A DNA stretch of 64,000 nt, taken from positions 396,847-460,846 of the forward strand of contig DF236960.1 in the NCBI GenBank assembly GCA_000708835.1, read 5' to 3'. Origin of the DNA: Klebsormidium nitens. Lineage: Eukaryota; Plantae; Klebsormidiophyceae. Numbering within the stretch: the stretch's first letter is position 1; each line of letters opens with the position of its first letter. The position numbers and the translations under genes were made by a program. The notes below the pieces were generated by a model. That model made no database searches, had not been told where the DNA came from, and saw only the letters and a list, made by a program, of their open reading frames with translations. This document shows positions 20,493 to 58,099 of this stretch, piece after piece.

Positions 20493-23400
20493 ATGGCGTT
20501 CGTCGCCGCGTTCGCTCCAAGGTTGGCATTGTCATGCTTTTGCATCGAACAGAGGCGCTTGGGCGCTCCAAAGGGTGTCTATGATCGTAAGCTTGGGGGC
20601 ATCACGCCAGGCATCCCAACGCCAGCACGATCAGCTCCCTTGTCAAAGAGATTACCGGTGCTGACAAGAATGATGAGTCGGGGAAATTCCAGTTCCGGCC
20701 TGAAACGGAACGGCCTCAATCACAATGCTTGGGAGCTTGTGATGCCTCTTTTTGGGTCTCAGCGGGATGCGATTGGTAGGAAAGGGAGGGGCCGTTTTTG
20801 TTCAGAAATGGCCAATGATTCCCATAACTCTGACCCGGCTTGGTCAAATCGTTCTTTTCAGACCCTCCTGCAAAGCCATAAATCTTCAGACTCTGAAAGC
20901 CTTGCTGCTCACACAGAAGCGAATCCCAGTAAACCCAAGGTTGAGCAATACTCGAATGAAGCTCAGACACGTGGCAGCATTTTCGAGAGCCCACTTCACC
21001 TCGAGGAATTGGAGCTGCCAGCAGAGACCAAAAGGTATATTCGTGTTCTCAGGAATCCTTATCAGGGAAGCCTGGTCTACCTGATTGGCACCGCCCACGT
21101 GTCCAAAGCCAGTCAAGATGACGTCAGGCTGCTCATTGAGGCAGTCATGCCGGACGTCGTAGCTGTAGAGGTGAGATTGATTTGTCGTCAATCTATGGCT
21201 TTCACGTTACTACGGAACTGAAAAACGTTGCGTTACGTCCAAACTACTTTAGCATATGCCAAGGCGGGTGAAAGTCAAGCGTGTGGCCGTCATGTGCAAG
21301 GGGCGATTTAGATCGCTTCAATCCTTGCTTTTGAACAATCAAGACGGTCTAAATGATCCGCAGCCCAAGCTTCGCAACTGTTACACAGCGGACTTGAGCA
21401 TGGCTGTTAGACGGTCTTAATCGTAATTTTGAATCTGGCCAACTTTGTTTACAGTCTGAAAGTCACTAATATTTGTGGTTATAGTCACGTCTACCTATAG
21501 CATTTTGTACTGAATCAGGGATGGGCGGAACACAGCTTGTGAACTCATCACAACACTAGGCTTATCCTTGGTCAGCATGTTTCGATTATCGTTCTCTCAA
21601 GTGCAAGCACTGCGTTGACCTTCAAGTTTCCCATGGCCAACTTTCTTTGAAGAAGCTCAAAGTATCCACTTCAAAAATCAGCTGCTGTCCACGACTTTTC
21701 GCAGCTGGACGAAGAAAGACTCGAGCTCTTTGAGTGTGGGTTGATGGAGGTAGTCAACTTTGCAATTGAAACGACGTGGGAGGTGAGGCTGTCACTCCCC
21801 TATCCCCCTACTTCGGCACGTGGACAAATAGGGTCAGATTTTTCATATTTTACTGAGATCACTTGAGAATTGCTTTGCAATCTCAAGGAAGTCTTCATGA
21901 ATATTGTGCCTTTTCCTTTGGAATCTGTCTTCAATGTTTGACGTGTATACGGTCGCATTAAGTTTAGGAACAATAATTGTAGCGAGTCACGCGTATAGGA
22001 TTCAGCGTATGATTGCACCCTGCCTAGATATCGAGTCCGGTTTGAACCGGCGCGCTCACGTATATCCGATCAGCAGATAATCTGCTACAGCTATAAAGTT
22101 TTACATTTCAGAATCTTGCTGATGAGTGCTGAGAATCGTTCAGGTGTTGGATACGGTACGCACACGCTATTCGGGCAACTTCTTCAAGCTTTGGTCCACA
22201 TACCATCCCAGCTTCCAGGCCCAAGTAAGTCGGGTTACCTTGACATTCTCGCCTTTCTTCATGTTGCGAGGCGTTTTGAAGCGTCCGCTTTGGACCGGAG
22301 ACCTCCAGACGAATTGGCGGACCAGAAGCGACGTCAGCCAGCTAGCAATTCCAGGCCCTCCCTCCCTCATTCAAGCCTCAAGACTTCAAGAAACTTCATT
22401 TCTGTTTAACGCTCTCTTAAGATTGCAAAGCTTCGAGTCCAGCACGGTCGTCAGAGTGATTAGGAATCGGTGCAGCTTTGATACCACTTTGATGGCTACA
22501 GTCAGGAGCGTGGGATTAGCCCGCGAAATGGACCAGCCCATCTAGTCCATAGATACCACTCGTGGTTTTCAACACCAGTGGTTTTAGAAGGTAACGTGGG
22601 GGTTCCGATGCCTCAGGCAAAGAGATAGGCCGACTGTGCCAACGCCAGATTGGGTTAAGCCACGCGGGGGGATCCCTCCGGCTCAGGATGCGACTATCGA
22701 CTGCGTCCGCCAGATATAGCGAGGCGGCCACATTCTGTCCCTCTCGCAATCAGCCACTACTGGGATTGAGGTTCTAGTCATCGTAAGCTGGTGGCTTCCA
22801 ATCTGAAGTGCGGAATACAACTTTCCTTGCAGTCTCTGGGAGTCTCCTATGCGTGCGACGTCCGCTCAGCGATCCACGCGGCCGCAATAGTTGGCGCCCG
22901 CGTCCTGCCCATCGACCAGTAAGTGCATCTGGTGTGCTGGGAACCAAGGATTGTGGACGACTTGCACGATCTCGAGCGCAGGCTCCCAGTGTTGTATGGC
23001 GCTTGGGCTTGTTGATCGGGAAGTGTGACAAGAGCAGCTTTTTGATCTGCCTAAGCCTCCGCCTGGTTGAAAAGCAGCTAGCGCGCCGTTACCAACCTGT
23101 GAAACTAAGCATCCACCTACAGATGTCCAGTCAGAAGCAGACCCAATGAGTTGCCTTCCGATTTGTGGAAACCGACTCCAGTGCGACATCAATGCACCGT
23201 ACAGGCTCCCGACTCGTTGTACGCCCTCACTAAAAGGCAGTTCGGCCTTGATAAAAGGCATTGGTCGAGAAACGGAATTGGGTCGCTTATTGCATCGACA
23301 TGAAACATAACTTGCGGTAAAAAGCGGTTGGCTAAGTTTATATCGACCCCTTGTCCAGTCACACAATGAGAACCTAGAATGCTTCGATAGAACCAGTATC

Positions 23401-26400
23401 TTATAGCAAGGCTGAGAATACTACCTGGATCTATGGAAAACAGAAATGTTCGAGAAGTTTCATGACGCAGTTTTCCGCTTGCAGGCCCACCGATGTTACG
23501 GATTTCAGGAAGGAGGGAACTGCTCAATTTCTCAAAAGGGAGGAGCCCAGCCTCAACGAAGAAGAACGAGTGAGTAATTGATAGGAAACCTCTGCTCTCA
23601 ACCTTCAGCTTTCGTTGAGTGCTCTGATCGATTCAATCTTTTCTATGGCAGCGGGCCATTTGATCGAAGACCAAAGTTGATGAACTGCAAAATCCCCCTC
23701 GTGAATTCACCGCATATACATCCTGTGCTTGCTGGAATTCTATGTGTTACCTATTTCAGCGCAAGGTCTCTAAGACACTGCCCTCCACGCCCTCTCGCGT
23801 GATCGATAGCCTCCGGACACCCATTCATAAAAACATCTCAAACGGGCTTCTTTGCGACTTCCGCTTGTTATAGTCTGGTCTAGATCAATCCCTGCATTCT
23901 TTCAATAAACGACCTACAGCCTTATTCCCGTTTCTTGAAATTAGTTGCTGTCCTGATCATGTTCGGATTCAATGTCGATTTGAAACGCGAGCGCGCCTTC
24001 CAGGGTACTCCCCGGAGCACTCGCTGATTCCGAGAGACTCAAATGTGACCGCCCTTTCAGAGAATCTTGGCAGGTTTGAACTCAAAAACAAACGGTCCGG
24101 TCCGAAGCACGTGTTCCAGAGACAAGTATCGCGTCACAGCAACGCGTTAGCCGTTAGACTGCCCCCAAATTATGGTCACGCGCCCACGTGAAAGGCGCGA
24201 TGCGGCTCTTCAGGTAGTGCGTCGTACGGCCGCGTCACAACTGCTCGAGAATCAATTTGAAGCATTCCTAAACCCGGACCATTACACAAAAACCGTTGCA
24301 CAAGCATTTGGAAGGATCTTCGCGACGTTTATCAAAGGTGAGAAGACGGCTCGCGGGTCCATGGACATTCGAAACGTGCAAATCGTTCTTTAAAATTGGA
24401 AATGTTGGTTCCTTTATTGTGCCCGCATGAGATTCAACACCAAGAAAAGCATAAATTCATTAGCCCAAAGCTACGCGCTTTGCACGCGGCCAATTTCCAC
24501 CAGAAGGCTAACCTCGCCCGTCCCAAGCGCCTGCTCACACTGCGGTTGGGGCACAGGAGAGTAAGAAAGCGAATCCGCGGTCACGTTCGAAACAGGCCTC
24601 AGAGGTCGGCTGTCAATTCAAAATTCACCACTACTTCCGCCAGATCTTCTGTGTTTAGTCTGCGGAGCTCGATCACAGAGTCAGTTTGACGATCTGTTCC
24701 ACTTTTCGTGATTTGTTCCCTGCAGGTTGCCTGTCTGTAGCTTCCGGTGAACACAGACTTTTGACTGTGACCTCAGGCTACCGTTTTCAAATCGGTGACA
24801 GATGTCTGTTTCTTGACACCTTGAATACCCGCCGAATGATCGTAAGCTGCTAAAGCCTACTCTGTGTGGAAATGAACAAATCCTTTTGGGCGATCATCTC
24901 GGAAGCTTGTCAAGTGATTGTCGTCTCTTGGCAGTGATCCGCGTATTGGTTTTGATCGTGGGCAGAAGAGGTGCGGACAGGGCTGACTAGCGCTTATCAA
25001 ACTTCGAGATCGACAAGGTTGTCGACATGTTGGAGAACCTGGTCGGATGTATCTTGGATCTTCTCAAGCACCTGAGAGCTGAGACAGATAGATTCTCAAG
25101 ACAGTTACGAATCTTTTGCGCAGATTGTTGACCCATCATATATATGCATGCACGTTTCGGCCCGACGAAATATCAATACCTAAGCTCCCGGATTGCATGA
25201 CTGGTATCTGATATTTCTACTCTTCAACATTTCCAGGCCAGCCAGCCCCTCTGGACGATGTTGAGATCTTCCAATCAGCTCTGAACAAGATTGTGGAGGC
25301 GGCCAGGCTCAAAGGTGTTAACGGCGAGATAGTGCCAGCGTTTGACGAGAAGGAAGGCCCAAACCAATACACCGCTGTGATCCACGAGCGGGATCGCTTC
25401 ATGGGACTCGTGAGTCGCTTGTCAGACGTTTGGACCGAAACGACCTGGGCCTGGTCTTGAATGACTATGTTTGACCAATCTTGGTTTTGTACTGTCCATC
25501 TAGCGGACCTTTTGGACTACGAACTGCCTGTTAAATTGGTTCAATTCGTGATGCCTGCCGAGCTCCCGGCGTCGTTCAGACCGTCTCCAGCCCATTGTTC
25601 TCACCAAACGCTGTCGTCGATGCTGCTCCTGATTCAGGGTGTGTGCGTCAACTTGGTGAAACTGTTTTGGGTCGTTTGCAGAAACTTGCAAACGTAGCGG
25701 CGGAATACACAACGGTCGTTGCCGTGGTGGGCGCGGTGCACGTACCGAGCATTACAGCCCGCTTTGCCCAGTACAGTACTGGGGACTACCGTAACCCTCT
25801 TAACAAGGCTTGGGCGCAGGATGTATCTCAGGAGACATGGGTGGACAAGGGGCGGGGAGGAGCGGAATCCTTACTCCGAGAAAATGCTCTCCAAGGAGGA
25901 GCTCCTGAAGTTGTCGGAGAACCGGGACGAAAGCAACAGAACTTGCCGGGAGAACAGCAGGTGAGTCAGAAAAACAGAACTAAGTAGGCGTCAGCCTGGG
26001 AAGAATCGTCTTCTTCGTCCAATGAAACTTTGGCAGTAAGCATGTCATGGACTTTGTACCGTGAAGTTTCAACATTTTGGTCCAAGTTGAGAAAGGGGGA
26101 TGCTCCACTGTGCACGAATCTAGGCCGTCCAACATTTCACATCGGATCGCCTAAGTTCATGCAGAATCCACGAAGAACCACTCTCGAAACGGGTTCGAAG
26201 TCCGGCGCCGCAATCCGGCTATGCCAAACAGAATCCAATTCACTGATTTTCAGAGAGGTTTCGTCGCTTACAAGCTTCGACGAGTCACCAAGCGTGGCTG
26301 GGTGACCGTTTCAAGCTGCAGTTCGAATGAAGCGGCTCAGGATCTCTCGCGCCTAGCTACTGTGAGTGTGCCTGGCCTTGGTGTCGATCATTCTTTCTAA

Positions 26401-26786
26401 TCAGCGAACCGCAACATCAGCTCGTTCGTGACCCCGTGCGTCAAAGAATCTCACATATATAGGGCCATGGAAATATCAAACCTGACACCCATTATGGAAT
26501 CAAAAAATTGCTTTTGGTTGAATTCTTGCCTTGTTTCCAACTGCAGAAGACAGGAAGGGAAGATACATCCTTGTCCCTGCCATTGCTTCATCAGGCGTTC
26601 ACGTTCGCGGGAGCCGCTGGAGCCAGCGGCTTCGTCTTTTATAAGTGGCCGATCATAACCGCGGAGCTTGGACTCGGCGCTGTCACAGCGCACGGAGTAA
26701 TAATGGTCGGCCTGGCGGCCTTCACAGCCAATTGGGCGCAATTAGGAGTGTACTTCGAGGACGCTTCGATAGAGCTTCGATCATAG
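20493..26786 (+). CDS. TraB/PrgY-domain protein, paralogue A (9 exons)
   Basis: Phase-consistent exons 20493-21170, 21705-21782, 22144-22224, 22833-22918, 23485-23569, 24214-24337, 25237-25409, 25682-25960 and 26547-26786. Motifs VYLIGTAHVS, PDVVAVE|LDEER, GARVLPIDQP, IHERDRFM, VVAVVGAVHVPSI. Ser/Arg-rich N-terminal extension and hydrophobic C-terminal exon. Confidence 0.88.
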
Positions 26787-27852
26787 GAAAAAGCACCGCT
26801 AAGATTCAAACCTTTCTCTTAAGGATCTGTATAAAGCAAAGTCGAGGACTGATGTCCATTTACAAGATTGAGAAGCAGTCAAAACCCACGATAGGAGTAG
26901 AAGATGCGGATACTAGGGTATATCACTTCACTTGACTGATGGGCTTCTGAAAATAGATTTTCACCGGGCTTCCGGCCACCGGTCGATCATGATCAGGCTC
27001 GGCGCCCCGCGAAGACGAGCGCTAGCTCGATCATGAGACGACCGTTTGGCGCCGTCTACAGCTATGTGCCGCTTCGAAAAAGAATCACTGTAAACTCGGC
27101 ATTCAATCGCAATGAGGGATGTCGACATGAAGTGTCCCAAAACACAACCAGGTACTGACTGTGGCAAAAACAAACAGTAGTAGTTATGATCTGCATAGTA
27201 GTACGTAGTAGAGAAGCAGGACGGTACTGCGTGCATTCACTGGCAGGCGTGCAGTGAAGCACTGCGCCTGACAGAACTACGTATATCATGGCCGTCTGCA
27301 ATCCTTGAGGACTGCTAAGCAGAATCTTGACTGTCATAGAAATAGCATGATGTAAACAAATAACCAAGAGAATCCTGCATCTCGCATTTTTTTGACTCGT
27401 GCGTGGTCCCTTAAATGAAGCCCGGACTTAGTAAGCAAGCAGGTTCTGCATGTCCACCATATTCTGAGCTAATCCAATCAGCTGCTCACGAAGTACGAAA
27501 GAATGAAGCACGAACGGTCACTGGTTGGTATTTCTGGTCGGATCGGTCTAGTGATATCATATGGTCACGTCAAATCGCGCGCAATTCTCACGTGAGGCGT
27601 CTGTGCGTCGCGTTACCCCCCACCGGCCATGACGTGACCGCAGACTCTGCAAGGTTCAAAATAAATTCAAGCGCTGGTTCCAAAAGCCATTCGAAAGGAA
27701 GGTCCGAGGTCAGAAGGCGTGCTTGAGCTGACGGGCTCCTGGCTTTATCATAGAGATGCTAAGCTGGAAGCGCTTCGTTTAAGCGGCAAGCGGACAAGAC
27801 GCTCAAACTGCTAGCTTTTCTAAGATTGTTCATTCAGCTTACTTCGGAAAAT

Positions 27853-30800
27853 ATGGCGGCCTTCGCGGCGGCTTTTGCTCCGAGGTTTACGTTCTCACCC
27901 CTGCAACTCAACGAGCAAAAACGCCCCTGCCGTTCAGATGCAAGGCTGATGAATATCGCCGTCCGTGCTCATGACAAGGCGGGAGGTATCAGGCCAGGCA
28001 CCTCAAGCACAGCACCATATGTGGGCTTGTCAAAGCAAGTACCGGTGAGGGTGGATTCCGAGGGGGGTCCGTGTTGCAGAGTGAGACGGGAACACCGGAG
28101 CCAGGATGCTGGGCGAACTTTAGTCCCATTAAATTCTAGGAGTAAGGCGTGGTTTGGTAGTAACGGCAGAGAGCAATCCCCTTCTCGAACGACCATTTAT
28201 TCTGAGTCCTACAAAGACGTTGGAGCAGGGTTGAAAGCTTTCCCGCACTTTGTTCCAGACTGCCAGGACCCTTCAGCATCTCAGACTCTCGCTGCCAACA
28301 AAGGCGAGTCAGGTCCAGAGACACCCCCGGAGCAACCCAGCTCAGGCGACTGGGAGAATGATGCCCAGACACGCCGCAACATTTTCGAGAGCCCACATTA
28401 CCTCGAGGAACTGGCGCTGCCGGAAGACACCAAAAGGTTCATTCGCGTCCTCAGAAACCCTTACGAGGGAAGCCTGCCTAATTGGCACCAACCACGTGTC
28501 CCAAGCCAGCGCAGATGACGTCAGGCTGCTCATTGAGGCGGTCACGCCAGACGTCGTGGCCGTGGAGGTGCGGTTTCACGCAGTGCCTACAAATTGAAAG
28601 CCTTCGCCGCTTTGCCGGGGCCTTAAGTTTTGGACCTGTTGCAGTCACGCCCTCGATTGCAAATCTGGCTTTCCGTAGAGATAGCCGTAGCACAGCGTTT
28701 GCCCTCTCCAAATAAGGATTGGAAGACAGTTGCTGGTCAAAGTCCACTCATTATATCTTTGTTGAAGTGAGTTCGCCAATTGTCCGGCCTTCTCAGACGA
28801 ATATATGCCGGACAGAAGGTGCTCCTCAATTCTAATTGGTCGGAGGCAATCTGAAGCCTGCGGCGAACACTGGCGATCAAGCTTTTGAGTCCACCTTAAA
28901 AATTTCTTTACATTTCTCAAACAGCTGGACAATGACAGACTCGAGACGTTCAGATGGATGGGGCCAGCTAGAGTTCCATTCCAAACAACGTTACAGGTAA
29001 GTAGCTCAATATTTTGAAAGGCACGTTCAGACCATTCGGTATCAAAAGTGAACAGTACGTACGTGAAGAGAGCACGGGGCCGTGGGCTCTTGTCTTGGCT
29101 GTTGACAATATCCCCAAGAACTTTGCACTTCAAGTTGATGCTTGGCAAAATCACCACTGATATGGTCGGGCCGGCCACCAAACGTTCCTACGATTACAGC
29201 TAGAGGTACTCTCATACCATCTTCGGTTTTCCTACTTCAGGCGTTAAACACCGTACACAAGGAGTTCTCGGGGGATTTCCGAGAGCTCTGGTCTTATTAT
29301 CTTGGCATATTCTTTGCCCAGGTGGGTATTTTCAACTATATAGCCCACTTTTCAAAAACGTTCCTTGAAGATTAATCAGCGCTATGATACTAGGCTTCGT
29401 CCAGGCAAGTGGATTTTAAGTTTTGCAAGAGTAGGCAGACTAAGGACGTACGCGAGACTCCAGCCACTATATAATTCTTGACTGCTAGTGTGAACTCCTT
29501 TGGGCATTTGAGTTTAACATTTTTTGTCTCTCGACAGCTTCAAGATGTGGATCAAACCAGAGATTGAGCGCCCAATCAAGCTCCCGCTTTCTGAACGGTA
29601 CTAGCTGCAACGGACACCGGACTCGGTCGCGGAGGCCCGTATCCATAGATTCAGATTTAATTTGTCGAAAACTACCGCTGAATTTTCTCTTGAAATGGAA
29701 TTACTGCAGATTTCGTCCTAACGTGCCGCCTCGCAGCAAGGGTTGCCAAGGAAACGTCCGAAAGAGCCATTTCTAGACCGGCCAGACATGTGAACACCCT
29801 GCATAAATACATACTGGTGCCTATGATCCGCCCAAAGTCAGTAGTGATCCTTAATCGCCCATGGGATTATCATGTCGGCTGACTTTACGCAGGCTTTGGG
29901 CGTACCTTATGGATGCGACTTCCGCTCGGCCATTCGCGCGGCCGAGCGACTTGGCGCCCACGTCGTGCCCATCGACCAGTGCGTTCTGGACTAGGAATCT
30001 TAAGGTTTTAGGTTTTGCAGTTTGCAAAGTATTGTTCTTTGAAAGCTGCTTCTGACCCTGGGCTTTCCTCCCGCTTTTTGGCAACACAGGTCCCGCTTTG
30101 CGGGTCTCTGAAGCGGCTACTGCCAGTTGTAGACCAGAGCACAAAGGTGTCCACAAAATCCCTTCTCGGCTAACTGAAAATGTTTACGAAAACTTATTCT
30201 ATTGCACCGCCAATCGTAGTGACCGATTTTATTCCTCGTTTGAAGGCCTCTGATTAGGAAGGCAGATGTATAGGCCTTATGCATAGGCATTAATGATTCG
30301 ATGAAGGCAGAGTTCGAATCAGATCCCACGAAATAAACCAGCCAGCTTCCTTCCGAATGCAATCAGACCAATCGGAGCATATTGCGGTGATCGCCAGTCT
30401 ATTAGTCGTGTTTGAGATATTATTGCTGTCGATCCCTTATTTATCAGCACTGAGAATCGAAGCACTAAACAAATCAAAACTCGCAGAACCCAAAGTCACG
30501 ATCTTTTACCTTTATCACTGCTGCAGACACAGCGACTTCACGGAGGAGAGGAAAAAGGAGATTGCGCGAATCCTCGAGGAGAAGAACGCCCGCCTCAGTT
30601 TAAAGGAGAGAGTACGTGATTTGCCCCATTCTAGAATGCTTCCAGCTTCATGGATGCAACGTCTCAATCGTATGCAAACACTATAGGATACTGACCTGCA
30701 ATGTACCATGAAATGTTCCAAAACGCTTTCCCAAACAGCCGACCGCTGAACTATATTCCGCTTTTATGTCCTACTTGGTATAGCACGGCCTGACTAGCCT

Positions 30801-33041
30801 TTCTCTAGTTACCATTTAAGATGAATTCAAAGACTTTAGTACCCCTCTGGTACTTTTCTCATCACTATTATTTTGACTGATTTGATCGTCTGGTTCTAAC
30901 GTAAGTCGGCTGGCATTCCGGCAGCATCCCGAGCCCTTGAAAAGCTAGGCCCGGTGTCTTCTTTGTTTTTTCAGGTCACACGTCTTGCGGAATCATTGCG
31001 ACGGATCAAGAATGAATGGAGAAACCCTTTGGCAGCGGAGGATGCCAAGACTGCAGTTAAAGCACTTGCGGGGATCGTAACGGCTTTTTTGACAGGTGGG
31101 TACAGGTTTGCAGGCTCCAGGAAAACCCACTTTTCAGCGCAGACTTCTGCCAGTCTTGTATATTGCCACGTTCGAGAAGGCCGCAAAGAACCTCGGCACC
31201 GTTGCATCCCATATGTATCGCTTATAGCTGATCGGGGGGCTTCTTAACCCAGAGCGTCGATCTCCATTTTTTTGGCTACCATTTTCATTTTAGCTGGAGA
31301 TACCGGCTCTCCCAAGATGCAACACTGCAGACCGGCCTTTGTTAGAGTTCTAATATATATATACAAAAAACACCGTTTGGCCCGTAGTCTTTTTCGAAAC
31401 TAAATATGCAGAAACTCGATCAGTCTCGATCTTTTTGACATCAAATGCATCCAAACAGGGTTAATTGCTACTCTTATACTTGCAGGCGAGCCTGCCCCTT
31501 TGGACGAGATTGTAGCTCTCCAATCTTATGGGAACAAGATCATGGAGGCGAGCCGGCTCGAAGCTTTCAAGAACGGGAAAATGCGGGAACTTAAAGAGAC
31601 GGGAAAGCAAATCGATATACTGCTTCGGTCCATGAGCGGGACCGTACGATGGGGCTGGTGAGTCGCTTGTTTTAAAAAAGGCTTGAACTGCGCCTTCTCC
31701 GCACGTACTCTGACCACTGTTTAGAATTTTCCGAACAGCATGTCCGTCTACTCACTGGACCATTCACATGTCAAATTTTGCCTGCTCTTGACAAGTGTCA
31801 AAAGCGGTGAGCTGGCCGGAGGGAAACGACCATATTTTGTTTGGGTCGATTACGCGTCATAAGGAAGCTGCACTTGGTTTCTTGATCACAGGAGCTTGCA
31901 AGGATTTCGACGAGGCACACGAAGTTCGTTGCGGTGGTGGGAGCGATGCACGTGCAGGGAATCATACTCCGCTTCGCCGAGTACTGTGCGGAGTTCTGTG
32001 CTCCTTCTGCTCAAGAGGATCTGGAAGAAAGATTTGACAAGGGTCCGGGGACTTCTTTAGACAAGGAGAAACGAGGGGTGCACCCCTTGCTCCAACAGGA
32101 CGGGCTTCCGGTAAGAGCTCAGACGCAATATGCACGAGAAAGGACAGAGATCGTTTGAGGAGATCGGACTTCTTCTGACGTCCATGAAGCGATAATATAT
32201 GTCCTTCCAAAGCGAGGAACATTGAAGTTCATTGCACGAAGTTTCGCCATCTGTTCCAACCAATCCAGCGGCTGCTGAACGATTGTAGAGCGGGAATCTC
32301 CCTTATGCATGTATATTAGGCCGTCCGATGTTCAATCGGGCTGCAACGATTCCATAAGGAGCAACGGTTCCAATAGTTTCCATCAGGAGCTTTTTCTCTG
32401 CTCGGAATCGAACTCTCGCTGCCCGTTCGTGGAGGCCCGTGACAAAGTGCTGATCCTACGATACGTCGGCGTCACCTAAAGCAATTAAAAAGTCGAGCCC
32501 GACTCAGATCGCCGTTCGATCTTGCAATTTGACTCAGAGCATGTCTTAGGCAGTGCACAAGCGCTCGGGCTGGCTCAGGTGTCCATCGGAGTTCCCCCCC
32601 CCTATCAGGTCTTATAATGTCCCGTCAGTCGTATCTTGATCGCCCCGAACATTACGTACGTTAACGAAGTTTGTGTAAAACAAATGATGAAAAGACGAGG
32701 TGATCAAACTTGATTCCCATCCCTGTTTTCGACTGCAGAAGACGCCAAATCAAACGAAGCTGGAACTGCTTCGCCGGGGCGTTACCCTCGTTGGAGCAAG
32801 TGGGCTCTGCGCCTTTGCCTGTTGCAAGTGGCCAACAATAGCGAAGCTTGGGATTGGCGCTTTTACAGCGCACGGACTACTGAAGTTGGGCCTGGCAGCC
32901 TTAACGGCCAAGTGGGCGGAGTTCGGAGAGTACGTAGAAGCGGCTTCTTCAGAGCTTCGTAAACAAGAAGATCCTGAAGAAATCGCTTTTCAGGAGTGGA
33001 TGCAGGAACTCTCAGCTGGACGGAAGGAGCCTTTTGCATAA
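27853..33041 (+). pseudogene. TraB/PrgY-domain paralogue B, frameshifted (probable recent pseudogene)
   Basis: Exons 27853-28567, 28925-28996, 29241-29321, 29893-29978, 30527-30611, 30975-31095, 31486-31657, 31892-32110 and 32739-33041 mirror paralogue A. Five nt (gtcta) are missing at 28476/28477 relative to A. Exon 7 is 172 nt versus 173 in A, which puts VHERDRTMGL out of frame. Confidence 0.8.
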
Positions 33042-34940: not shown

Positions 34941-37900
34941 CTAGTCGCTCGTTCCGCCGGCTCCGCTGTTTCCGGCGCGTGTCGCTCCTTCCAGGTACGC
35001 GCCGAAGTGAGCCCATTCTGCGGTAAGGGCGGCGAGACCGATCTGGATACCGCCCCCGGTAAGAGCGCCGCCAGCGCCCAGCTTCAACATAAGGCGCGGG
35101 CGCTTATAGCAGGCAAGGGCGCCTATTGCGATGCCCGCCGCGGCCGCCGCTCTCCCGCGCGTGATCTCCGGCAGTCGGGGGGCTTTATCGGTTGGCGCTG
35201 GCTTCATACGAGCTTGAAGCTGCGTGGATGTTTTGTGAACCGAGCTCATTTGGAGCAGGAAAAATGAGCATTGAGCATTTAGCAGAACAACGTCCTGAAT
35301 AAACGCTTCGCTAGTGCGGCTCCTCAATGGTGGATTGCAAGCGGCAACAGAATGGCCACAGATCTTTGCCTGCTATATCCCCATTATTATTCATTGAGTT
35401 CAAAGATCTTTAAGAAATTCTTTTCAGACAAATCCACGATCTGCTAGAAAAGTGAACCCCGCGAATCTAATGAACAACAATTGCACTGCAAGTGAAAATT
35501 CTCAATCGATCTTTTCAAATTGGCCATCTGGTGCACTGATCACTCGCCTGTTCGGCTTCCCACTCTGCTCGTTGCTTCTCCAGCTCTGCTTTGCCCTCAT
35601 CACTGACGTGAAACTCCAAAGAGTATCTAGCGAATTGGGCAGTGATTCCAGGGACGTGTGCGGCCCCGACGACCGCCACGACTTTCTTGTGCTGGGCCGC
35701 CAGCTGGGCGAGCGTCTGCGAGGCAAAGCATGCCCGAGGATGTATATCAAAAGTCTGGTAGTCACATATAGGTAAATCGTGTGCGACGCGAAAGCCCATA
35801 TTGAGTCGAAATTCAGGTATTCTGAGGCCACGCTGACCTTGAAAGCATGTCCTAAAGCGTCTGCACTTTATTGTTTTTTAATCGACCCAAGTTCCCTGAG
35901 ACGATTCAGGAACTAGAAAAGTCGCGGACGGGGAGCCCAACGCCGTGCTTCCAGATGCCAGTCCTTTTTGACTGACAGATAAAAGGAGAGTGCCCAGACT
36001 GGCGAGAGATGCGCCGCGTCTTTTGTGGAAACATCGGCGGACGGGCGCCAGGATATTCGACGTGAATTGATGACTGGAGAGCACTCACAAAGGCCATATG
36101 ATGGTCCCTTTCGTCAACGAGCGCGGCCTTCACGCATGCGTAGTCTTTGTTGGTCGCCCAATCTCCCTGCAGCCCATGGTCGAAGCTGTCACGTCGCAGT
36201 TTCTCAACGGTCCTTCTGCCGCAGGCGCGGTAAGCGGCGACATCGGCCAACGGCACCGGGCGTCCTGTTAAGGCACAAGGGGATTCTTGTTTTGTTTGGG
36301 TCCGGCAGGCCGGATCGAGCCGGCGCGACTTACGTCGCAATGAGTCAATTTTATCAGCTGGCCCATCGACATTTCAGGATTCAGAGCCCCTGTTCTCGTC
36401 TTATAATCAAACGGCATTCTTGAACTTCCAACGTTCTCTCGGCCTCGGGCAGTCCGATGTCTCCACTCAGTCGTTTAAAGTGAGATGCCTCTGCGGCTTG
36501 ACATAGTGGCAGAGATGTTTGCTTTTTCACTCTGGTTTTCGGGTATATCTCCGAACAGTAAGAAGCACGATACCGTCTGACAGATGCAATGGACTGGATG
36601 GAGCGATTAGCAGATTCTTGGCTCGTCTTCCTTCAAATCTCGATCTGATAAGTAACCGCTGCAAGTCCTCAAGAATCTCAATTTCTCATGCATTTTACTG
36701 GAAGTTTCAGGACAAAACGTCTCACCCTCACGGTATGCTGCCAAAACTCTACCGAAGGCTTCTTTGACGCCTTCCGGATCCTCGCAGGGGACGAGTGCTT
36801 CTTCAAGGTCCTTGGCAAAAGCAGCCTTCACGGACTCCCACGTAAGCTGCATCGTAACGTTGAAACGAGCAAAATTTGAGCAGGTGCCAATCAAGGAGCC
36901 TTTTCGGAATGGACATTTGTAATTAAATACAAGCTGCGGTCCAGAGCTTGTCAAAAGTGTCACCGGTTCTGTCACTGTTTCTCAAAGCTTCAACATGTCC
37001 CAAGCATAAAGCATCCGGTGTCAACGGAGATTTTGCAAATTCGAGAGCCACTCAAATCACGGTAAGGTTGATGGATTGCATACCCTAGGCTGGGGTTCAT
37101 CCTTCTCTGGCTCGCCGAACATGATCTTCCAATGTTCTTCCGCAACCTTCGCACTGGTTCTTGCCCAGTCCCTGGTTCCAAAGATATAGCGGAAATTAGT
37201 AGGAACATTTGGTACACTTGGGTATGAAGACTGTGTACCACGCCATCAATCCGTTCATAATCTAGCTGGATTCCAATATTTCTCAAAAGTGCGCTTCACG
37301 AATATCTGTTACAAAGGCCACTGAAATTGTTCTATTGCATCTCACCCTCTGTTCCGGGCTGAGGCCTGGGGTTCGGCCTTTTGCAAGCAATCTCCGATCT
37401 GATCCTTTTGATTGAGGGATCTAGAGCGTGACTGAGGGTTTGATTGAAAGATACTTAATTGACGCAGCTCACTGGTCAATGGTCTCAACGGGGATTCTAA
37501 AGCGACGAGCGGTCCGCACCGCAGACTCAAGGTCGCACGCCTGTTCTGCGCCTAAAAACTGCACATTGGATAGTCGGCACGTGTCATCGAGTCGTACGTT
37601 CCTTGGGGAGTTGCCCGCGTTCACTTGAAAACGAAGTCGAAGTGATTCAAATTGGGTAGGCGTACTTGATGGGAGATGATGATCAGCTTTGAATGGCCTG
37701 TTCGCGGTATTCCAAACGGTAAGACGTAGGATGAAAGTATACTTTTAAAAACTAAAGAATGAAGATGCGGTTCGATTTCGAGTGGGCTCTATGAGCGAAC
37801 CTCTGTAGAGTAGATACTTGCATCCTGTCATGAAAGTGTCTGGTTTTACTATATTACACTGGCAAACCCCTGGTAGGTCGGTGACAACTTAGGAGTCCGA

Positions 37901-39262
37901 GTTCCTGAAAAGAGCTTTCAAACAATCGGGGTTTGGACGCCCAAACAGAAAAACGAGGTGCATGGAGGTAACCACCTGTGCGAGGAACGTGTCGAAGTAC
38001 AAATCCCATATTTGCAAGATTGTCTTCTTTGTATACCACTTGAAGCAAAGTACCTGCATGCAAAACATTCTGACAAGTTTGTAAAGCTCCTTTTTTCCCT
38101 CAGGCCTACCAGCAGCTAGCTGTGCAGGCCTCTGAAATGACCTTTCGGAAGCAATCTGCACCTGCAACATTAAAGTACAGAGCAAGCGGCTTTAGGAGCA
38201 AGTATGCTCGCAATTCGAGCAGGACCGTTTGTATACTCGCTGAATTCTTTTAGGCAAACCTCGGGATAAGGCAGAATCTACCACACTTAGATTGTCTTTT
38301 CTTGCTGTCAAACCTCAGACTCACCTCCCACGCCGTCGTCCCTAGTTGCTGAGGGATGCGTTTGTGAGCCCCGAGTTCGATGTTACGTAGCCTGACAGGG
38401 TCAAGCTGTAAAACGAGTCCGAGCAAGCTTTGTCAATTCAGCGCAGTTTCTCGGAAGACCTGTCCACGTGTGCTTTTAAAGACGGGCAGGATGCATCGCG
38501 AGCGAGCGGTTAAAGCCATCTTTGGTGGTGAAAGACTCTTAAAGCCTGTTTGTTGCATTCAGGAAAGAAGTGCTGAGAGTTCTTACAGCTGGAGTTTTTC
38601 CAGGCGTTGGTACTTTCATCTGAAGGATCGGAAACTTTGAGATCTGTGGACTCAGAGGTTCGATTGTTCGTGAACAGTCAAGTCCTCCTGATTGGACCGC
38701 TAGGCCGGAGCAACGGGAGTTTGAAGATGATAGAAAGCTGACTCCCGTTTGCAGGCTACTGCCTTCCGAAGGGTACTGATTATCAGTTGTCCTGCTTTCA
38801 ACGCTGCTCTGTACTCGGGCTGATAAAGTCGCCCTTCAGCAGACTCACCTCAACAGCCATAACGTCCGGCTTGACCGCCTCAATGAGCATGCTGACGTCA
38901 TTTGCGCTCACTTCGGACACGTGGACGGTCCCAATAAGGTAAACCACATGGCCGTTCGCCGGGTTCCTGAGCACCCGGATAAAAGCCTTGATTCCATCTG
39001 GAAGTTGTAGCCGTTCGAGGTGACGTGGGCTCAAGAACAGGGTGACGGCTTCGGGCTGAGTTCCTAAGATTTTTAAGGCTTTTTTCAGGGGGTAGTCTGG
39101 GCAAAGAATGTCTGTCAAACGGTTTTCAGCGAGGAGGTCGGAAGCGGGGTAAGCAACCGGCGCAAGGTCAGAAAGGGCACCCTCTAGTTCCTGCTCGCTT
39201 GTGGAAGAAGGTGGCGCGGCGAGGTTTCCCAGGCCTGGCAGTAAGGGCTGCGAGGAGACCAT
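34941..39262 (-). CDS. TraB/PrgY-domain protein, paralogue C (9 exons)
   Basis: Exon 1 is 39262-38849 (VYLIGTVHVS..PDVMAVE) and exon 2 is 38405-38325 (LDPVRL..TTAWE). Later exons encode VLCFKW..FLAQ, FLGAEQACDL..IPVETIDQ, AFGRVLAAYRE, LVDERDHHMAF and VVAVVGAAHVPGI. The final hydrophobic exon ends at 34941. Intron phases match A wherever checked; the last intron appears to use a GC donor at 35547. Confidence 0.86.
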
Positions 39263-47154: not shown

Positions 47155-47390
47155 GCAGAGCGCAGTTCACTTTCTTCAAACGGCTCTCGAACGGGTGAGG
47201 CTTGCTGTCAATCTGAAGCGGCTTTCTTCGGTTTCTGCTGAATGCTCTGCGGTTCGTTGTGGTGTTTGAGACGGCAGAGCTCCGTTCACTTTCAATAACG
47301 GATCTTGAACGGGTGACGCTTGGGTCAATATGAAGCCGCTCTCTTTGGTTTCTGCTGAACTTTCTCAGGTTCGCTGTGGTGTTTGAAACC
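47155..47390. repeat. Two-copy tandem repeat, period ~117-119 bp
   Basis: The unit gcagagc..gttcacttt...gaacgggtga.gcttg..tcaat.tgaagc.gct...ggtttctgctgaa...ggttcg.tgtggtgtttga occurs at 47155 and 47274. Confidence 0.8.
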
Positions 47391-47789
47391 AATTCAGGTT
47401 CAGGTGCTACATGTTTCCGTCGACCCTAGACGCATCTCTAGAAGGGGCTCAGAAGGCAGCGTGTGGTTCTCAGTTTTGACGTAAGCCTCACGTTAGCACG
47501 TCACTGCTTATCTGCCGCTCTAGATGGCCATATTTGCCACGGAGCTCTCGGTAGAGCGACTGAGGTTTACCGACCGCAAAGCAACATGGTTTCTTCATGC
47601 GTCCCCCGTTTTCGACAAACTGCTACAACTCTGACACGTGCAGATGTTATTACACTGGTGATTGGTCTAGTAACCACTAACAGCAAAGCAGCCGCATCTG
47701 CCGGTAACAGTCGGAGAGTGTGCAAGGGCAGCTGGTTTGTGAGTTTGTTCAGGGTCTGCCGTCGTTCTCTCGCTTTTACTTCCGATTAC

Positions 47790-48080
47790 CGTGATACACC
47801 ATGACTTTGCCAGTGTTCTGCAGCTGGACGCGTGTCCCGGCGATGACGGCATGCCCGTGCTTGACGACGTGGTACAAGATCTTGCCGGCCTGGTGATCGA
47901 GCGCGCTGCTAGATGATGTGAGCGCCCTATGTTTAAAATTTTGTCTCCTTGTCGTTTCGTTTCCTTCAGCATACCCTGCTCTTCAGCATACCCTTCCGTA
48001 AGGACTGATTTGCCTCCCCGTGTCGCGGCGAAACGGGCCTTCTTCAGTGTCTCTTCCGCTAGAGCCCTTTGCAGCTGGAT
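47790..48080 (-). CDS. Two phase-compatible exons of an unidentified gene
   Basis: Exons 48080-47992 and 47905-47790 (GT-AG, phase 2 junction) give IQLQRALAEETLKKARFAATRGGKSVLTEGALDHQAGKILYHVVKHGHAVIAGTRVQLQNTGKVMVYHG. The second exon is rich in GC-ending codons. Confidence 0.45.
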
Positions 48081-52830: not shown

Positions 52831-53752
52831 AGGTTTGCAGCGAAGAGTGAAACTATCGGCATTCGCAAGGGCTCAATGATGGAAGTGAGATTCACAAACC
52901 AGTTTGCGGCGTAAGGCTTGTGAGACCCATAAGTTTGGTCAACTAGAATTAATCGTACAACAAACATGAAAGGACGACAAAGTATGTTCATTTAATGACT
53001 TTGTCCTTTCAAGTCGTCGCGCGCCCATTTGATCGTTCTGGATCCTGAAATGAAATTTTCACCGGTCGATTCATTGTAAAGCGAAGTATGAACATGTATC
53101 CCCAGGGCCTTCAGGCCGCCGGTCACTCTATTATTAAAATGGCCTGACATGCTCGGTGTTCGACCAGCCGAACTCGTGCTCGGGCCTACCAAGGCTTTTA
53201 GCATCTTTACACCAGTCGAGAAGGAGGGCCAAGCAAAGGCTTTGAGAAAATGAGAATTTGTCAGCAAAAAGGAACCTGAAAAGACGCACGAAAGGTCTTG
53301 TATTGAGCTAATGGTGAAAATGGAGATACGTCGGTTGTCAATATCAAGGAAAGAAGACTTCAAAGGACGGCAGGACTTGGAAGGTAGCAAGTCGAACATC
53401 TTACAGAATCTGGGGATCCTCGACTGATCGACTGATTGGATTTTCCTAAGCTTCCTAAGCTAGCTATAGGACTACAAAGAATCTAAAGACGCTAATCGTT
53501 CACGACTTTGACACCTGTAAATCATGACCCTTAATACGTGATACCTTGTCCGGGATTCTAGATAATCAGACACGTAAGACGCTATAAGATTTTCCAGAAT
53601 AAGGTCGCTGCTACTTTGAAGCGTCGCTTGAGTCCTTGAGGGCAAACCAGTCAGTTCGTCGACCTTCTAAGTGTCCTTAATTTCCATCTCTCTAAGGCAC
53701 TTAGTATCTAGCTTGTTCTCAATGTCATGATAGACCTGAGGTCTGCTCTGGA

Positions 53753-56700
53753 CTACATGGTTTCAAAGCAGTCTCCGGTCTCGCAAAACAGCTGATCTGG
53801 CACCGGAACAGGCGTCAAGCTAGCGGTCCCTCTGGCCTCCATCTGACGTGTCGCCTCGTCCAAGTAGGCCCCAAACTGGGTCCATTTGGCAGTTAGTGCG
53901 GCAAGTCCTAGCTGGATGCCACCCCCAGCTAAAGCACCTCCAGCGCCAAGCCTGCGCATAAGCCGCGGTCGCTTATAACACGCCAGCGCACCGGCGGCGA
54001 CACCGGCAGCGACCGCTACCCCTCCAGTGGTGACCCGGAATCCCAGGGAGCTTGGTACCTGCAGGGGTCTCGTATAGAGATTCCTACGAAAGCTACATGG
54101 TCTTGCTCTTGAATTCGCGTCTGTTTTCCTTAACGGGTTCGTCTCTTCATCTGTTTGCAAGACCTTTAGGTTGACCGGAGCATGCACACCGAGTTTCGAC
54201 AAGGGGTCAACTGAGTAATGAAACGTGCCTCCTCAAGAAACTGCGCTCTTTCAAAGCTTTGTACCTAGTCTGGTCCAATTCCTATGTTCGTAATACTAAC
54301 AGACTCTCACGGTTATTTGAAGACCACTGAGAGACGAGTCGTTGCTCGATGCACATTTTAGCATCTAATATACCCATACGATGCGGATCTGCCCAACTCC
54401 GTTCCGCCGGACTCAAGCAGAACAGATCACTTGCCTGATCCGCTTGCCTCTCAGGTAACGTTGCATCTCGCCGTTTCGCCTTTCCCTCCAGGTTGATGTG
54501 GCGCGCGAGAGTGTACTCAGCAAAACGCGCACTGACGCCGGGGACGTGCGCCGCCCCTACGACGGCCACGACCGTCGTTTTGGGCTGCGCTGCAAGCTGC
54601 GCGAGTCTCTGCAACCACGGATTTAGAAGCGGCTTAGTTCGGGGTGTCCGGATTGAAGAATCAAGGCCAAATAGTTCGGCTGAACTGTCTGAGGTGTTTG
54701 CAGCGAGGTGAAGACAGTCTGGTGATCGCAGTCAGTAATCCGCTGTCGAGAAGGCCGCTAGCCACCAGGCCGCTTCGAAGCGAGAAAACCCTTTCAGCCC
54801 GTTGGTGGGCTTGTTGCTTGAAACAAATGTCACTTTGCTGGTGATCAGGAATCTTACTGCTTCTTTGACAGTGTACCAGTCAAGAACACTAGCCACGGAG
54901 TTCCGAGCATTACACTCTACAGTAGAATTTGAAACGTAGGGCACAGTCAATCGTGATATAAATCTTCTAGCTCGAGAATTGAGCCATCAATCAAACACAA
55001 TCCTTTTGCTGGCTCACATAAAGCTGCCTTGCGGGACGAGCCGCCTAGTTGGAATCGGCTCGTGACGACTCGCATATAACTTACAGCGCCCATGTGGTCG
55101 TCTCGCTCGTCGAGAAAGGCTGCAGCCACGCTGGCAGGTCTTCCTTTCAATCCTTGATCAGCGCCATCGAAGCCGTTCCGACGCACCTTGTTGAGCACTT
55201 TGGTGCTGCACGAGCGATACGCCGCAACATCCTCCAGCGGAACGGGACGTCCTGGGGAAAATCGGGCATGAATTGAGTCGCATGCCAATTCCAGTTTGCA
55301 CTACCTCAAACGGCATCTAACGCTGTTTTTGGCAGACTTATCCATGTACTCAACCAGAGCTTATAAACTCCTCAGCTATAAAGTCTTACCGTACAAACAC
55401 GAGGAGCCATTGAATCTTTGATTTAAGTTCCTGGATTTCTCTGACCACAGGGAGCTTTGGCTCCAAACAGGAGCTGAACCGGGGCCGAACTGGAGGACTC
55501 CGCTCCTGAAAAGTGGCGGACGAACCGGAGCTAGGCCCTGGTTTGAGGCCGGTTTGCTGAGAACAGGAACCGGTTCATGAGAATCGGCTCCGATTCGGAA
55601 GGACCGGTTCCTTTTCCTTCTGAACCGGCCTTGAACCGGGTCCTAGCTCCGGTACGTCCGCCCCTTTTCCGGAGCGGAATGCTCCGGTTCTGACCCTGTT
55701 TGCCTCCGTTTTAAAGCCAAACTTTGGCATGCGTGCACACTATACATACAGCCATCATCTGTCCACAGAGCGCTTTCAATGATGGATGTATGTATAGTGT
55801 GCACGCATGCCTAAGCGTCTAGCTAGGTCGCACTCACCTTCTAGGAATGCTTGGAAGACCCTCTCAAATGCGTCCACTGGTCCTGTTGGATCGTCACAAG
55901 CGCTTTTCAACATTCCCTCGATGTAGCCCCGATCTGCCGCCTCCATCTGTACCTTTGCAGAATCACGTCGGATTACTACAGTACAAGTATCCCGCCGTTG
56001 GAAAAGCCACAGACCGTCATGTACCCATGGTTTCTTCGCTAAGTTGAGGTTGCGAAAGCCAAAGCATCCTTGCAAGCACATGAAAGTGAGCCCAGGAGTT
56101 AAAAACCCCGTGAATCCCGTCGGAAAAGTCTTGGTGCTGGGTACGTCGCAAGCAAGTTTTTATTGGCCTTGATGGCAACTCGCATTAGACGGCCTTACAT
56201 GAGACAACCAACTTCAGGCTCACCTCCGATTGTCCGGACTGCTCCTCTTTTTCCGCATGCTCTGCATACGCCTTGGATATCCTGGAACCAGTCAATTTGT
56301 GATCCCTGTGTCCCCAGAAACATCATGTGTGAGTTCTCAGAGAATGGAAAGAAGTGGTCGGCAGAAGATTTGCCATTCAGAAAAGCACGAGCTGCTCTGT
56401 GAACTTCAACGCCTCCAATAAGGAAGTCAATCGGTAACAACATTTTAATCTGCACTAAAAAGTACGCGTATATTGCTTAGTGATGGTGATGGACGTATCC
56501 AGGTAGATCTACATTCGGGAGAAAGGATTCTGCTTGGCTTCTAAAGTTGTACTCACTGGTCAATGAGTTCGATGGGGATTTGCAGGCGCCGAGCAGTCTG
56601 AATTGCGGATTGCATATCACCTCCGTAGTCCGTGCCCACAACCTGGATGCATAGAAGAAAAAAGCAGTTGCACTTCAAATAGAAAAATTAGCGTGACGGT

Positions 56701-58099
56701 ATGCTTGGACCCGCTTTGTGTGTGCAATTCCACTCGAGTCTGAGGGTTTCCAGAACAGCTTACGATGCCCATAAAAGTTGGCAGCTAGATTTTGCCCGGA
56801 CGTGGATAGCACTGAATGAGCACAGCCGGAACAACCGTGAGCATTCTTGTTTCTGTATATTTCACAAGCCAAGCAACCGTCGTCTGCAGTCCGGTTGATT
56901 AGCCGAAGAGTATTATCAAATAAGCTGGTTACCTGACTGAAGAAGACCATCTGCAGGTACGCCCCCCACAGCTCCTCAAAACTCGAATACTTCGTCCATC
57001 TGACGTAGAGAGCCTGCAATTTCCCAAATTGGGCTTTCAGAAAGCTGTGGGCTGGGCGTCGGAGAAACGGCCGGATTGTAAGTGAAGTCGTACTTTAAAT
57101 AGCTGTCGCTCGCCAGCCGTCTGCGTATCGTTGCACACGAATACATACATCCCTCGCGCAGAGCCGCCTAAGCCGCCTAATGTAATTTCTGTTGGCGTCA
57201 CAGACATGACTGCGTGCATCAGGAGCTACAGGTCGTGCTTGCAAGAAAAGACCGTTTCACCTTCCATGTTGTGGTGCCCAGATCGTCCCGTATTTTCGCA
57301 AAGTACCCGCCTTCAATGCGGGCGAGCCTTTCGGGATCAAGCTGCAAAGACGAGAACTGTCAGTGCACGTCCGGTACAGCTGGATCTTTGGGTTTTGGGC
57401 GACCTTAAGAACGTAATTCCCGAGACAATCCCTTCTTCAAAAGCTACTCCACCGTAAGTTCTGTTAGAGAAGTAGGGCAAAGTCTGCAACAAACTCGTCC
57501 TGTCAAACAATCTGGCGTGAAATAATCTCGCCTGCATGAAAAGGAGAGTTTCCTGATTAGGGAGACTTTCTTTCACTCTTTGTAGGAGACCGAACAAAGC
57601 TTCTGTCAGACACCCACAACTCCGACAGACACTAGGGTCTATGACTTGCCTGCTCAAATAACATCGAAGCTCGTGCACTGACCTCTATAGCGACAATGTC
57701 TGGTTTCACTTCCTCGATAAGCATTCTGACGTCATCCGCGCTGGCCTTTGAAATGTGAACGGTGCCGATGAGGTACACCAGGCTGCCCGTGGCGGGATTC
57801 TGGAGAACTCTGACGAAGACCTTGTTTTCCGGCGGAACTCGTAGCAGGTCTAGGTGCCGGCGGCTCACGAACAGCGGAAGGACCTCTTTAGGCTGAGAGT
57901 CGATCACCTGAAATACTCTTTTCAATGGATACTCTGGGCGAAGAATTTCTGTGATGCGGTGTTCGGCCAGAGGGTCGGAGGCGAGATCAGGGAATGGTGG
58001 AGCAGAGAGGGCTTTTTCAGTTTCTTCCTCGCCTAAGGAGCTAGAAATTCTGGGCATAATGGCCCCTGGTGCTGGAAGCGAGGGCCGGGAGAAAGCCAT
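53753..58099 (-). CDS. TraB/PrgY-domain protein, paralogue D (9 exons), closest to C
   Basis: Exon 1 is 58099-57683 (MAFSRPSLP...VYLIGTVHIS..PDIVAIE). Later exons encode LDPERL..TTTWK, ALYVRW..FFSQ (57013-56933), VVGTDYGGDM..IPIELIDQ, AFERVFQAFLE, FLDERDDHMGA and VVAVVGAAHVPGV. The final hydrophobic exon ends at 53753. Apparent GC donor at 54434. Confidence 0.86.
55464..55702. repeat. Foldback (long inverted repeat), MITE-like, inside an intron of TraB paralogue D
   Basis: Arms 55498-55576 and 55601-55679 are about 80% reverse-complementary by manual alignment. Outer ends are CAAACAGG and CCTGTTTG. The spacer contains the hairpin GAATCGG-ct-CCGATTC. No TSD recognised. Confidence 0.8.

Follow-up and report, generated by a model that had tools for sequence, protein, structure and literature searches.

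Does the cluster of four diverged TraB-domain genes at the end of a Klebsormidium nitens scaffold represent a dedicated enzyme system, or is it one dense part of an older gene family? The genes, referred to here as TraB-A to TraB-D (A to D), lie in the window that was analyzed in this study, the last 64 kb of the 460,846-bp K. nitens scaffold DF236960.1 (GCA_000708835.1). Positions are given in window numbering, which equals the record position minus 396,846. A first-pass annotation of this DNA had interpreted the four genes as a local expansion of putative metalloproteases, consistent with membrane-anchored peptidases that diversify in substrate, and as the window's strongest candidate for an undescribed system. 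Our analyses indicate that the array is likely the dense local part of a lineage-expanded family, made up of three apparently intact genes (A, C and D) and a probable pseudogene (B) of a Klebsormidium-specific TraB/TRABD-type clade, which were duplicated long ago and are not a coordinated system.

Identification of Four TraB Genes

A search of the six-frame translation of the window with the pattern V[VI]GxxH identified four sites, each the second GxxH motif of one gene: VVGAVH in A (25724-25741, + strand), VVGAMH in B (31934-31951, +), VVGAAH in C (35656-35673, -) and VVGAAH in D (54546-54563, -). The same four regions, and only those four, were linked by all-against-all BLASTP of the stop-to-stop open reading frame (ORF) pieces of the window, with E-values down to 1e-41. 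Together, these data bear out the previously claimed four paralogs and their arrangement, A(+) B(+) C(-) D(-). The corresponding GenBank products (P0010, P0017, P0019 and P0018 for A to D, respectively) are exact matches to the window and are all on DF236960.1, with gene A at 417339-423632 of the record and its product matching base-for-base. All four genes are present in GenBank as hypothetical proteins; A (KFL_000110445) is a "TraB family protein" in UniProt, as is every member of the cluster that was looked up.

Family membership was determined with the Pfam profile PF01963 (TraB_PrgY_gumN), whose gathering cut-off is 26.8 bits. For this and the other full-length searches, as for the structure predictions, the GenBank products only were used, and single exons were searched individually. 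The products of A (P0010, 50.2 bits), C (P0019, 60.9 bits) and D (P0018, 65.2 bits) scored above the cut-off, as did that of a fifth paralog, E (P0011, 70.9 bits), whereas the B product (P0017, 19.8 bits) scored below it. Single exons scored 15-26 bits each. These scores agree with the earlier assignment of the genes to the TraB family.

All four copies encode the motifs GTxH, ELD..R, ERD..M and VVGAxH, as the first-pass annotation had stated. The first motif is GTAH in A, GTNH in B and GTVH in both C and D; the second is AVELDEER, AVE/LDNDR, AVELDPVR and AIELDPER in A, B, C and D, respectively; and the third is, in the same order, ERDRFM, ERDRTM, ERDHHM and ERDDHM, with the ERD segment of B situated 3' of a frame change in exon 7. 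The invariant Glu (V-E-L-D/C) about 24 residues past GTxH is present in every window copy. In a 66-sequence alignment (E numbering), G66, E93 and R298 were invariant, and T67, H69 (65/66), D299 and H325 were near-invariant and kept in the window copies. Paralog E and its ortholog have Gly in place of the near-invariant Arg of ELD..R.

Predicted Fold of the TraB Domain

AlphaFold2 models were obtained with a 66-sequence alignment for E (predicted local distance difference test (pLDDT) 74.6, predicted template modeling score (pTM) 0.72) and for D (pLDDT 75.6, pTM 0.70). In both models the core confidence was >90, with weaker helical inserts. The core of the E model is a parallel beta-sheet flanked by helices (core strands E61-67, E89-92, E170-173 and E316-322), and the motif residues are located 1-3 residues past the C-terminal ends of the four core strands. 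It is at this C-terminal strand edge of the sheet that TIKI-fold active sites are found (PMC6254334), and the GTxH His, the ELD Glu, the ERD Arg and Asp and the second GxxH His are all retained.

Structural comparison with VIA-align matched the E and D models most closely to the TraB-family subunit of Tetrahymena complex IV (Z 15.1-15.2, over 204-221 residues at 19-21 % identity; 7w5z_E to D, Z 15.2). This was followed by ChaN (Z 8.9-9.3 to E and D), HopBA1 (Z 7.2-7.7), RRSP (Z 6.8), BcR135 (Z 6.5-6.7) and EreC (Z 6.6). The structures matched here, including ChaN, HopBA1, RRSP and Ere, are recognized members of the TIKI superfamily (PMC6254334), and these matches of the predicted structures support the TIKI-type fold that had been suggested for these proteins.

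The closest solved structure (7w5z_E, 8b6h_DQ, 8bqs_DQ), from Tetrahymena thermophila, resembles what is proposed for the algal proteins in its mitochondrial membrane context. It has GTTN for GTxH and VQTN for VELD, so that the first His is replaced by Asn and the Glu by Gln, whereas the algal copies keep both residues; from its sequence, the Tetrahymena subunit looks like a pseudo-enzyme. We consider it a real, although not the favored, possibility that the K. nitens proteins lack enzymatic activity and act as membrane tethers, receptors or structural subunits, with the motifs kept for folding or binding. Such a role would be in keeping with the best structural match being a respiratory-complex subunit, with the sole characterized plant relatives being tethers and ATG8-binding receptors (PMC9513094), with the replacement of one near-invariant Glu in the window copies and with the missing ELD..R Arg of paralog E. 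Against such a role, and unlike in the Tetrahymena subunit, the His-Glu pair and the second His are still present in A, C and D, although a pure scaffold would not need them. The retained His-Glu pair would support a hydrolase activity, on peptide or ester, of the Ere/TIKI type.

Exons 2, 3, 5 and 6, which had been described as highly diverged, correspond to helical parts that lie between the core strands of the E model and have lower confidence. The description fits exons 5 and 6 best (14-34 % and 18-33 % identity among copies, respectively) and exons 2 and 3 less well (26-52 % and 22-48 %), and exons 8 and 9 are little better conserved (24-52 %). The exon 1 core, by comparison, is 61-62 % identical among A, C and D, and A and B align closely over the same core.

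The combination of conserved catalytic-type residues with strongly diverged exons 2, 3, 5 and 6, in helical parts where a substrate-facing lid could lie, is what would be expected if the array encoded dedicated, locally expanded membrane-anchored metallopeptidases whose variable surfaces fit different substrates in a system under diversifying selection, and the many diverged copies in related algae could be read in the same way. We consider this interpretation very unlikely. The copies are too diverged for a selection test, since saturation of synonymous sites is to be expected at a protein identity of 35-52 %, and substrate diversification is argued only from the divergence of low-confidence helical regions; the decay of several copies fits relaxed constraint equally well. 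Metal dependence is no rule of the family, as RRSP and Ere are metal-independent TIKI-fold enzymes (PMC6254334), and one near-invariant Glu is Asp in every copy, so that the naming of the motif residues as metal ligands was an assumption. Moreover, no co-duplicated partner genes were found in the window, and the copies are old, with no recent burst.

Exon Layout and Gene Models

Paralog E (P0011, KFL_000110140) has exactly nine exons, base-for-base, and served as the layout template. Joined exon models were used only for local alignments and trees, with B read with X at each break. A protein-guided spliced aligner recovered the conserved exons, and in the divergent central part of C and D it over-fitted spurious small exons; therefore its exon 5 and 6 calls in these two genes were not trusted. 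The nine-exon layout that had been claimed for all copies was found in A (with exon 3 added), B, D and the template E. In C, exons 1-4 and 6-9 were located and exon 5 was not found.

TraB-A (20493-26786, +) is an exact match to P0010, and its open frame joins cleanly when exon 3 is included. In the nine-exon reading its exons are 20493-21170, 21705-21782, 22144-22224, 22833-22919, 23486-23572, 24217-24339, 25239-25409, 25682-25960 and 26547-26786. The intron positions are those of E once the conserved exon 3 (22144-22224) is included and exon 1 (20493-21170) is read as one frame. The GenBank model of A drops this 27-codon exon 3 and 530 in-frame bases of exon 1. These 530 bases are conserved in paralog E and in P0001 from another alga, which backs the long exon 1 with 54 % identity over 232 aa, the first ten (MAFVAAFAPR) included. 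The true product of A is probably of about 606 residues, not 403.

TraB-C (34941-39262, -; P0019 match) has exons 1-4 at 38849-39262, 38325-38405, 37976-38053 and 37472-37558 and exons 6-9 at 36730-36846, 36089-36262, 35545-35715 and 34941-35195. Exon 5 was not found by homology, and a comparison of the exon 5-6 interval of C with that of D gave only the 3' part of exon 6. Exon 4 (FLGAEQACDLESAVRTARRFRIPVETIDQ, 37472-37558) holds the conserved LG..ACD..SA...A segment and is left out of the GenBank model P0019. A reading of C without exon 3 was considered and rejected, as P0019 shows this exon at 37976-38053 (VLCFKWYTKKTILQIWDLYFDTFLAQ), too diverged for a DNA or motif search. At the end of exon 8 (35525-35560), the sequence CAG/GCGAGTGATC offers a GT donor four bases on (GCGA/GTGATC). 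This donor is the one in the GenBank model, in phase 1 with the acceptor at 35196/35195, and a GC donor is not needed.

TraB-D (53753-58099, -) was placed by its P0018 match and by spliced alignments. Exons 1-4 are at 57683-58099, 57261-57341, 56933-57013 and 56556-56642, exon 5 at 56224-56280 (or 56220-56305), exon 6 at 55836-55946 (or 55838-55975) and exons 7-9 at 55085-55249, 54534-54608 and 53753-54055. For exon 8, the open frame and homology extend beyond 54534, to about 54355, and the GenBank start of D is the second ATG, at 58057. Intron 6 of D contains an inverted repeat with 132-nt arms (55456-55721; 77 % complementary, 2-nt loop) and, adjacent to it, another with 37-nt arms (55722-55815; 95 % complementary, 20-nt loop); these hairpins could be a small foldback element or a source of hairpin RNA.

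In A, C and D there are open frames in every conserved exon, and the GT-AG borders were intact where checked. Several of the GenBank models of the cluster genes look wrong.

Lesions in TraB-B

TraB-B (27853-33041, +) was delimited by spliced alignment to A and by its P0017 match, with exons at about 27853-28567, 28925-28996, 29241-29321, 29893-29979, 30528-30614, 30978-31097, 31488-31657, 31892-32110 and 32739-33041. Its start codon, ATG at 27853, is intact. The frameshifting of B noted in the first-pass annotation proved correct, with two breaks. DNA alignment of the four exon-1 ends revealed a 5-bp deletion in exon 1 (28472-28481, between 28476 and 28477), which falls within the otherwise invariant SLVYLIGT segment. 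The second break is a one-base frame change in exon 7 (31600-31612, near 31606), just upstream of the ERD motif. The GenBank product P0017 evades both breaks by having exons 1 and 7 partly out of frame and by skipping exon 2. The 5-bp deletion is unlikely to be a sequencing error, and on these lesions B is probably a pseudogene.

Relationships and Age of the Copies

A HMMER search with E against 1.84 billion representatives returned five proteins at E<=1e-30, namely A, B, C, D and E, all from K. nitens. The next matches were exon-sized fragments of related algae and the K. nitens proteins KFL_007860020 and KFL_000970110, and the first full-length match outside K. nitens was from Closterium (1e-17). 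Paralog E is about 270 kb away from the array on the same scaffold. Counting E, three further members of the clade are elsewhere in the genome, for at least seven genes of the Klebsormidium clade in K. nitens.

A maximum-likelihood tree was calculated from 59 sequences with support values from the Shimodaira-Hasegawa-like approximate likelihood ratio test (SH-aLRT); land plants were represented by one sequence (Parasponia). The Klebsormidium clade had 99 % SH-aLRT support, with subclades A/B/E (94 %) and C/D/F (84 %). Closterium was placed as its sister, the next neighbors were in a green-algal group (Chlorella, Pycnococcus and Pyramimonas), and the Chara, Myrmecia and Parasponia sequences fell in other parts of the tree.

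Pairwise identities among the copies were 34-52 % overall (A-B 44 %, C-D 52 %, A-E 52 %, A-C/D 35 %). Paralog E is 78 % identical to a nine-exon ortholog on a metagenome contig of a related alga, and the pair has 99 % support. As E pairs with this ortholog and not with A, the array duplications are older than that species split. For A (beyond exon 1), C and D, no clear one-to-one ortholog was identified. Given these identities, an A/E split older than the species split and three clade members elsewhere in the genome, the local expansion described in the first-pass annotation cannot be read as a recent burst.

In the related alga, C/D-type genes are present as head-to-head pairs about 2 kb apart, with exon-1 cores that are nearly identical by eye, and in some copies there is an in-frame stop, or the ERD or VVGAxH motif is gone. 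These recent duplicates and decayed copies, together with the lesions in B, point to birth-and-death evolution, in which the TraB family of this algal group appears to duplicate and decay repeatedly. The array would then stem from tandem and inverted duplications of long ago, after which the copies diverged and occasionally decayed. In the related alga, a few kb from a head-to-head C/D-type TraB pair, there is a Ty1/copia-type retrotransposon (gag, integrase, RVT_2; L005 158-3860).

Another reading is that most of the array is dead or dying, with B as the most obvious pseudogene, A, C or D as silent relics and E as the working gene. The 78 % identity of E to its ortholog is far above that of any window copy to anything found, its branch in the tree is the shortest (0.07 versus 0.28-0.53), the GenBank models of A, B and C resort to odd splicing, and exon 5 of C was not found. 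We nevertheless think it unlikely that A, C and D are relics, as they have open conserved exons, GT-AG borders where checked and all the motif residues, and dead copies at 35-52 % identity would long have gathered stops.

Protein Termini and Predicted Targeting

Each protein consists of a variable N-terminus, a TIKI-fold TraB domain, a linker and two C-terminal hydrophobic helices. Two subtypes are distinguished by their N-termini. A, B and E have a long, basic and presequence-like extension of about 150 residues (10 K+R versus 2 D+E in the first 60 residues of A), whereas C and D have a short (about 70 residues), acidic N-terminus. For E, the open frame runs 143 codons 5' of the annotated ATG (L002 9572-10000, upstream of KFL_000110140). 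This upstream frame matches the N-termini of the orthologs P0002 and P0003 and that of A, and therefore the annotated start of E is probably too far downstream.

In every copy, two Ala/Gly-rich hydrophobic stretches split by Y-K/R-(W/R)-P are found in the last 60-80 residues, with Kyte-Doolittle windows of 1.2-1.8 (A to D). They correspond to helices 390-411 and 420-457 in the E model, long helices are also present in the D model, and the "Y(K/R)RPR + hydrophobic" region is conserved among green-algal homologs. Thus, of the membrane anchoring claimed for these proteins, the hydrophobic C-terminus was confirmed in all copies, and the anchoring itself is drawn from analogy: TRB1/2 and TRABD are tail-anchored TraB proteins of the outer mitochondrial membrane (PMC9513094; PMC12329661). 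We infer that the C-terminal helices may be a membrane anchor and the N-terminal extension an organelle presequence. The helices would anchor the proteins in an organelle membrane, in the manner of human TRABD and Arabidopsis TRB1/2 at the outer membrane of mitochondria, and the A/B/E type would be routed differently, that is, imported, through its basic extension.

Genomic Neighborhood of the Array

The interval between C and D is 14.5 kb and has one annotated gene, of 230 residues. No Pfam match was obtained for ten ORFs from this interval, Rfam and tRNA scans of the window likewise gave none, and the all-against-all BLASTP of the window ORF pieces identified no neighbor gene that had been co-duplicated with the TraB copies. 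The designation of the array as an undescribed system does not stand, given that the genes are already in GenBank and carry the UniProt label, and that neither a co-duplicated partner nor a functional link was found. Our literature search found no paper connecting Klebsormidium with the TraB family, and therefore the expansion itself, as distinct from the genes, seems to be undescribed, which is of modest interest.

Other duplicated genes were observed in the window. Two head-to-head ARM/HEAT-repeat genes, at 12377-14680 (-) and 15254-17527 (+), are 41 % identical over 774 residues, with a weak F-box-like match at the N-terminus of the second. A further local duplication (8756-9715 versus 10927-11831), with pieces of 46-73 % protein identity and matches on both strands, is situated in or close to the 3' part of the first ARM-repeat gene. 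Downstream of the array there are two paralogous ORFs without introns, one of 388 aa at 59483-60649 (+) and one of 371 aa at 62544-63659 (+), which share 35 % identity over about 300 residues. Leucine-rich repeat (LRR) matches of F-box-associated type were obtained for the first, and only the second is in the GenBank gene list for the stretch. On the basis of the ARM-repeat pair and the LRR ORF pair, local duplicates are common at this end of the scaffold.

Comparison with Known TraB and TIKI Proteins

The K. nitens copies resemble Arabidopsis TRB1/TRB2 in their green lineage, in belonging to a small gene family and in having a TraB domain followed by a C-terminal hydrophobic anchor (PMC9513094). 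TRB1/2 are mitochondrial outer membrane proteins that function in endoplasmic reticulum-mitochondria contacts and mitophagy and bind ATG8 and VAP27 (PMC9513094). In the algal copies, by contrast, the C-terminus has two hydrophobic helices, a Glu-to-Asp change specific to the clade is present, and A/B/E carry the long basic N-terminal extension. There are also at least seven genes in K. nitens versus three in Arabidopsis, and in our tree the land-plant sequence, from Parasponia, was in another clade than the Klebsormidium copies.

Human and Drosophila TRABD similarly have a Tiki/TraB-family domain together with a C-terminal transmembrane segment, which is necessary and sufficient for targeting to the outer mitochondrial membrane (PMC12329661). 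Unlike the K. nitens copies, TRABD is single-copy in animals and without an N-terminal extension; it is distant in sequence and was outside the best matches examined. TIKI1/2, Wnt-specific metalloproteases compared here by description, belong to the same superfamily as the algal proteins, with the same fold, and like them have two GxxH-type His motifs and a conserved Glu; they are also membrane-tethered, as is proposed for the algal proteins. They differ in being extracellular, metazoan, metal-dependent proteases.

The Enterococcus PrgY/TraB proteins and bacterial proteins annotated as "pheromone shutdown protein TraB" (e.g., P0040 and P0015) are alike in their PF01963 domain, their length of about 400 residues, their C-terminal membrane helices and all the core motifs. 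The bacterial proteins are 22-27 % identical to the K. nitens copies, have the PGxE Glu and ELC/ELD, and are without the green-algal middle region (...PL.DV...R.CG.K.VE..R...) of exons 6-7.

Interpretation and Significance

The reading of the array as part of an old, lineage-expanded family draws on the genes' place in the TraB family, the fold predicted for them, the motifs they retain, how old the copies are and how they are related, and the lesions of B. Several points weigh against one or another part of it. The description of A, C and D as intact is provisional, given exon 5 of C and the boundaries of exons 5, 6 and 8 of D. The pseudogene status of B is weakened by the possibility that the one-base change in exon 7, which is in a purine run, is a 454 homopolymer error, as the K. 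nitens assembly was made from 454 and Illumina reads (PMC4052687). The sister position of Closterium to the Klebsormidium clade had only 81 % support. The protein searches found no transcript-derived near-identical proteins for the array genes, and the supplements of a K. nitens study (PMC9121098) contained no matching gene IDs.

Other points concern function. The proposed localization and catalysis are drawn by analogy, enzymatic activity has been shown for no plant or animal TraB-domain protein except TIKI (PMC12329661), and the closest solved structure is a non-catalytic-looking respiratory-complex subunit with GTTN/VQTN in place of GTAH/VELD. Further, Asp replaces the PGxE Glu in A to E, G and Closterium, at a position where 58/60 other sequences have Glu. 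This change might alter or abolish activity; it is a conservative one, and the PF01963 profile was still passed.

We speculate that in the Klebsormidiophyceae a TraB/TRABD gene that is usually low-copy may have given rise to a fast-evolving family, duplicated again and again, which comprises two targeting classes, one with a presequence (A/B/E) and one with an acidic head (C/D), and has an active-site Glu-to-Asp change in common with Closterium. The proteins could then be active organelle-membrane hydrolases whose diverging helical lids suit different substrates, for example in organelle quality control under the stresses of land life. We regard this scenario as a long shot.

Apart from the value of its gene variants, considered next, the array is mainly an annotation point, in that several GenBank models appear to be in error and B is a probable pseudogene. 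TraB/TRABD proteins occur from bacteria to humans and are on mitochondria in plants and animals, and we know of no biochemical activity for them. An alga near the base of the land plants that has at least seven diverged copies, with two N-terminal types and the core His and Glu kept, offers a set of natural variants. These K. nitens variants would be useful for asking whether the TraB domain is an enzyme and what sets its targeting.

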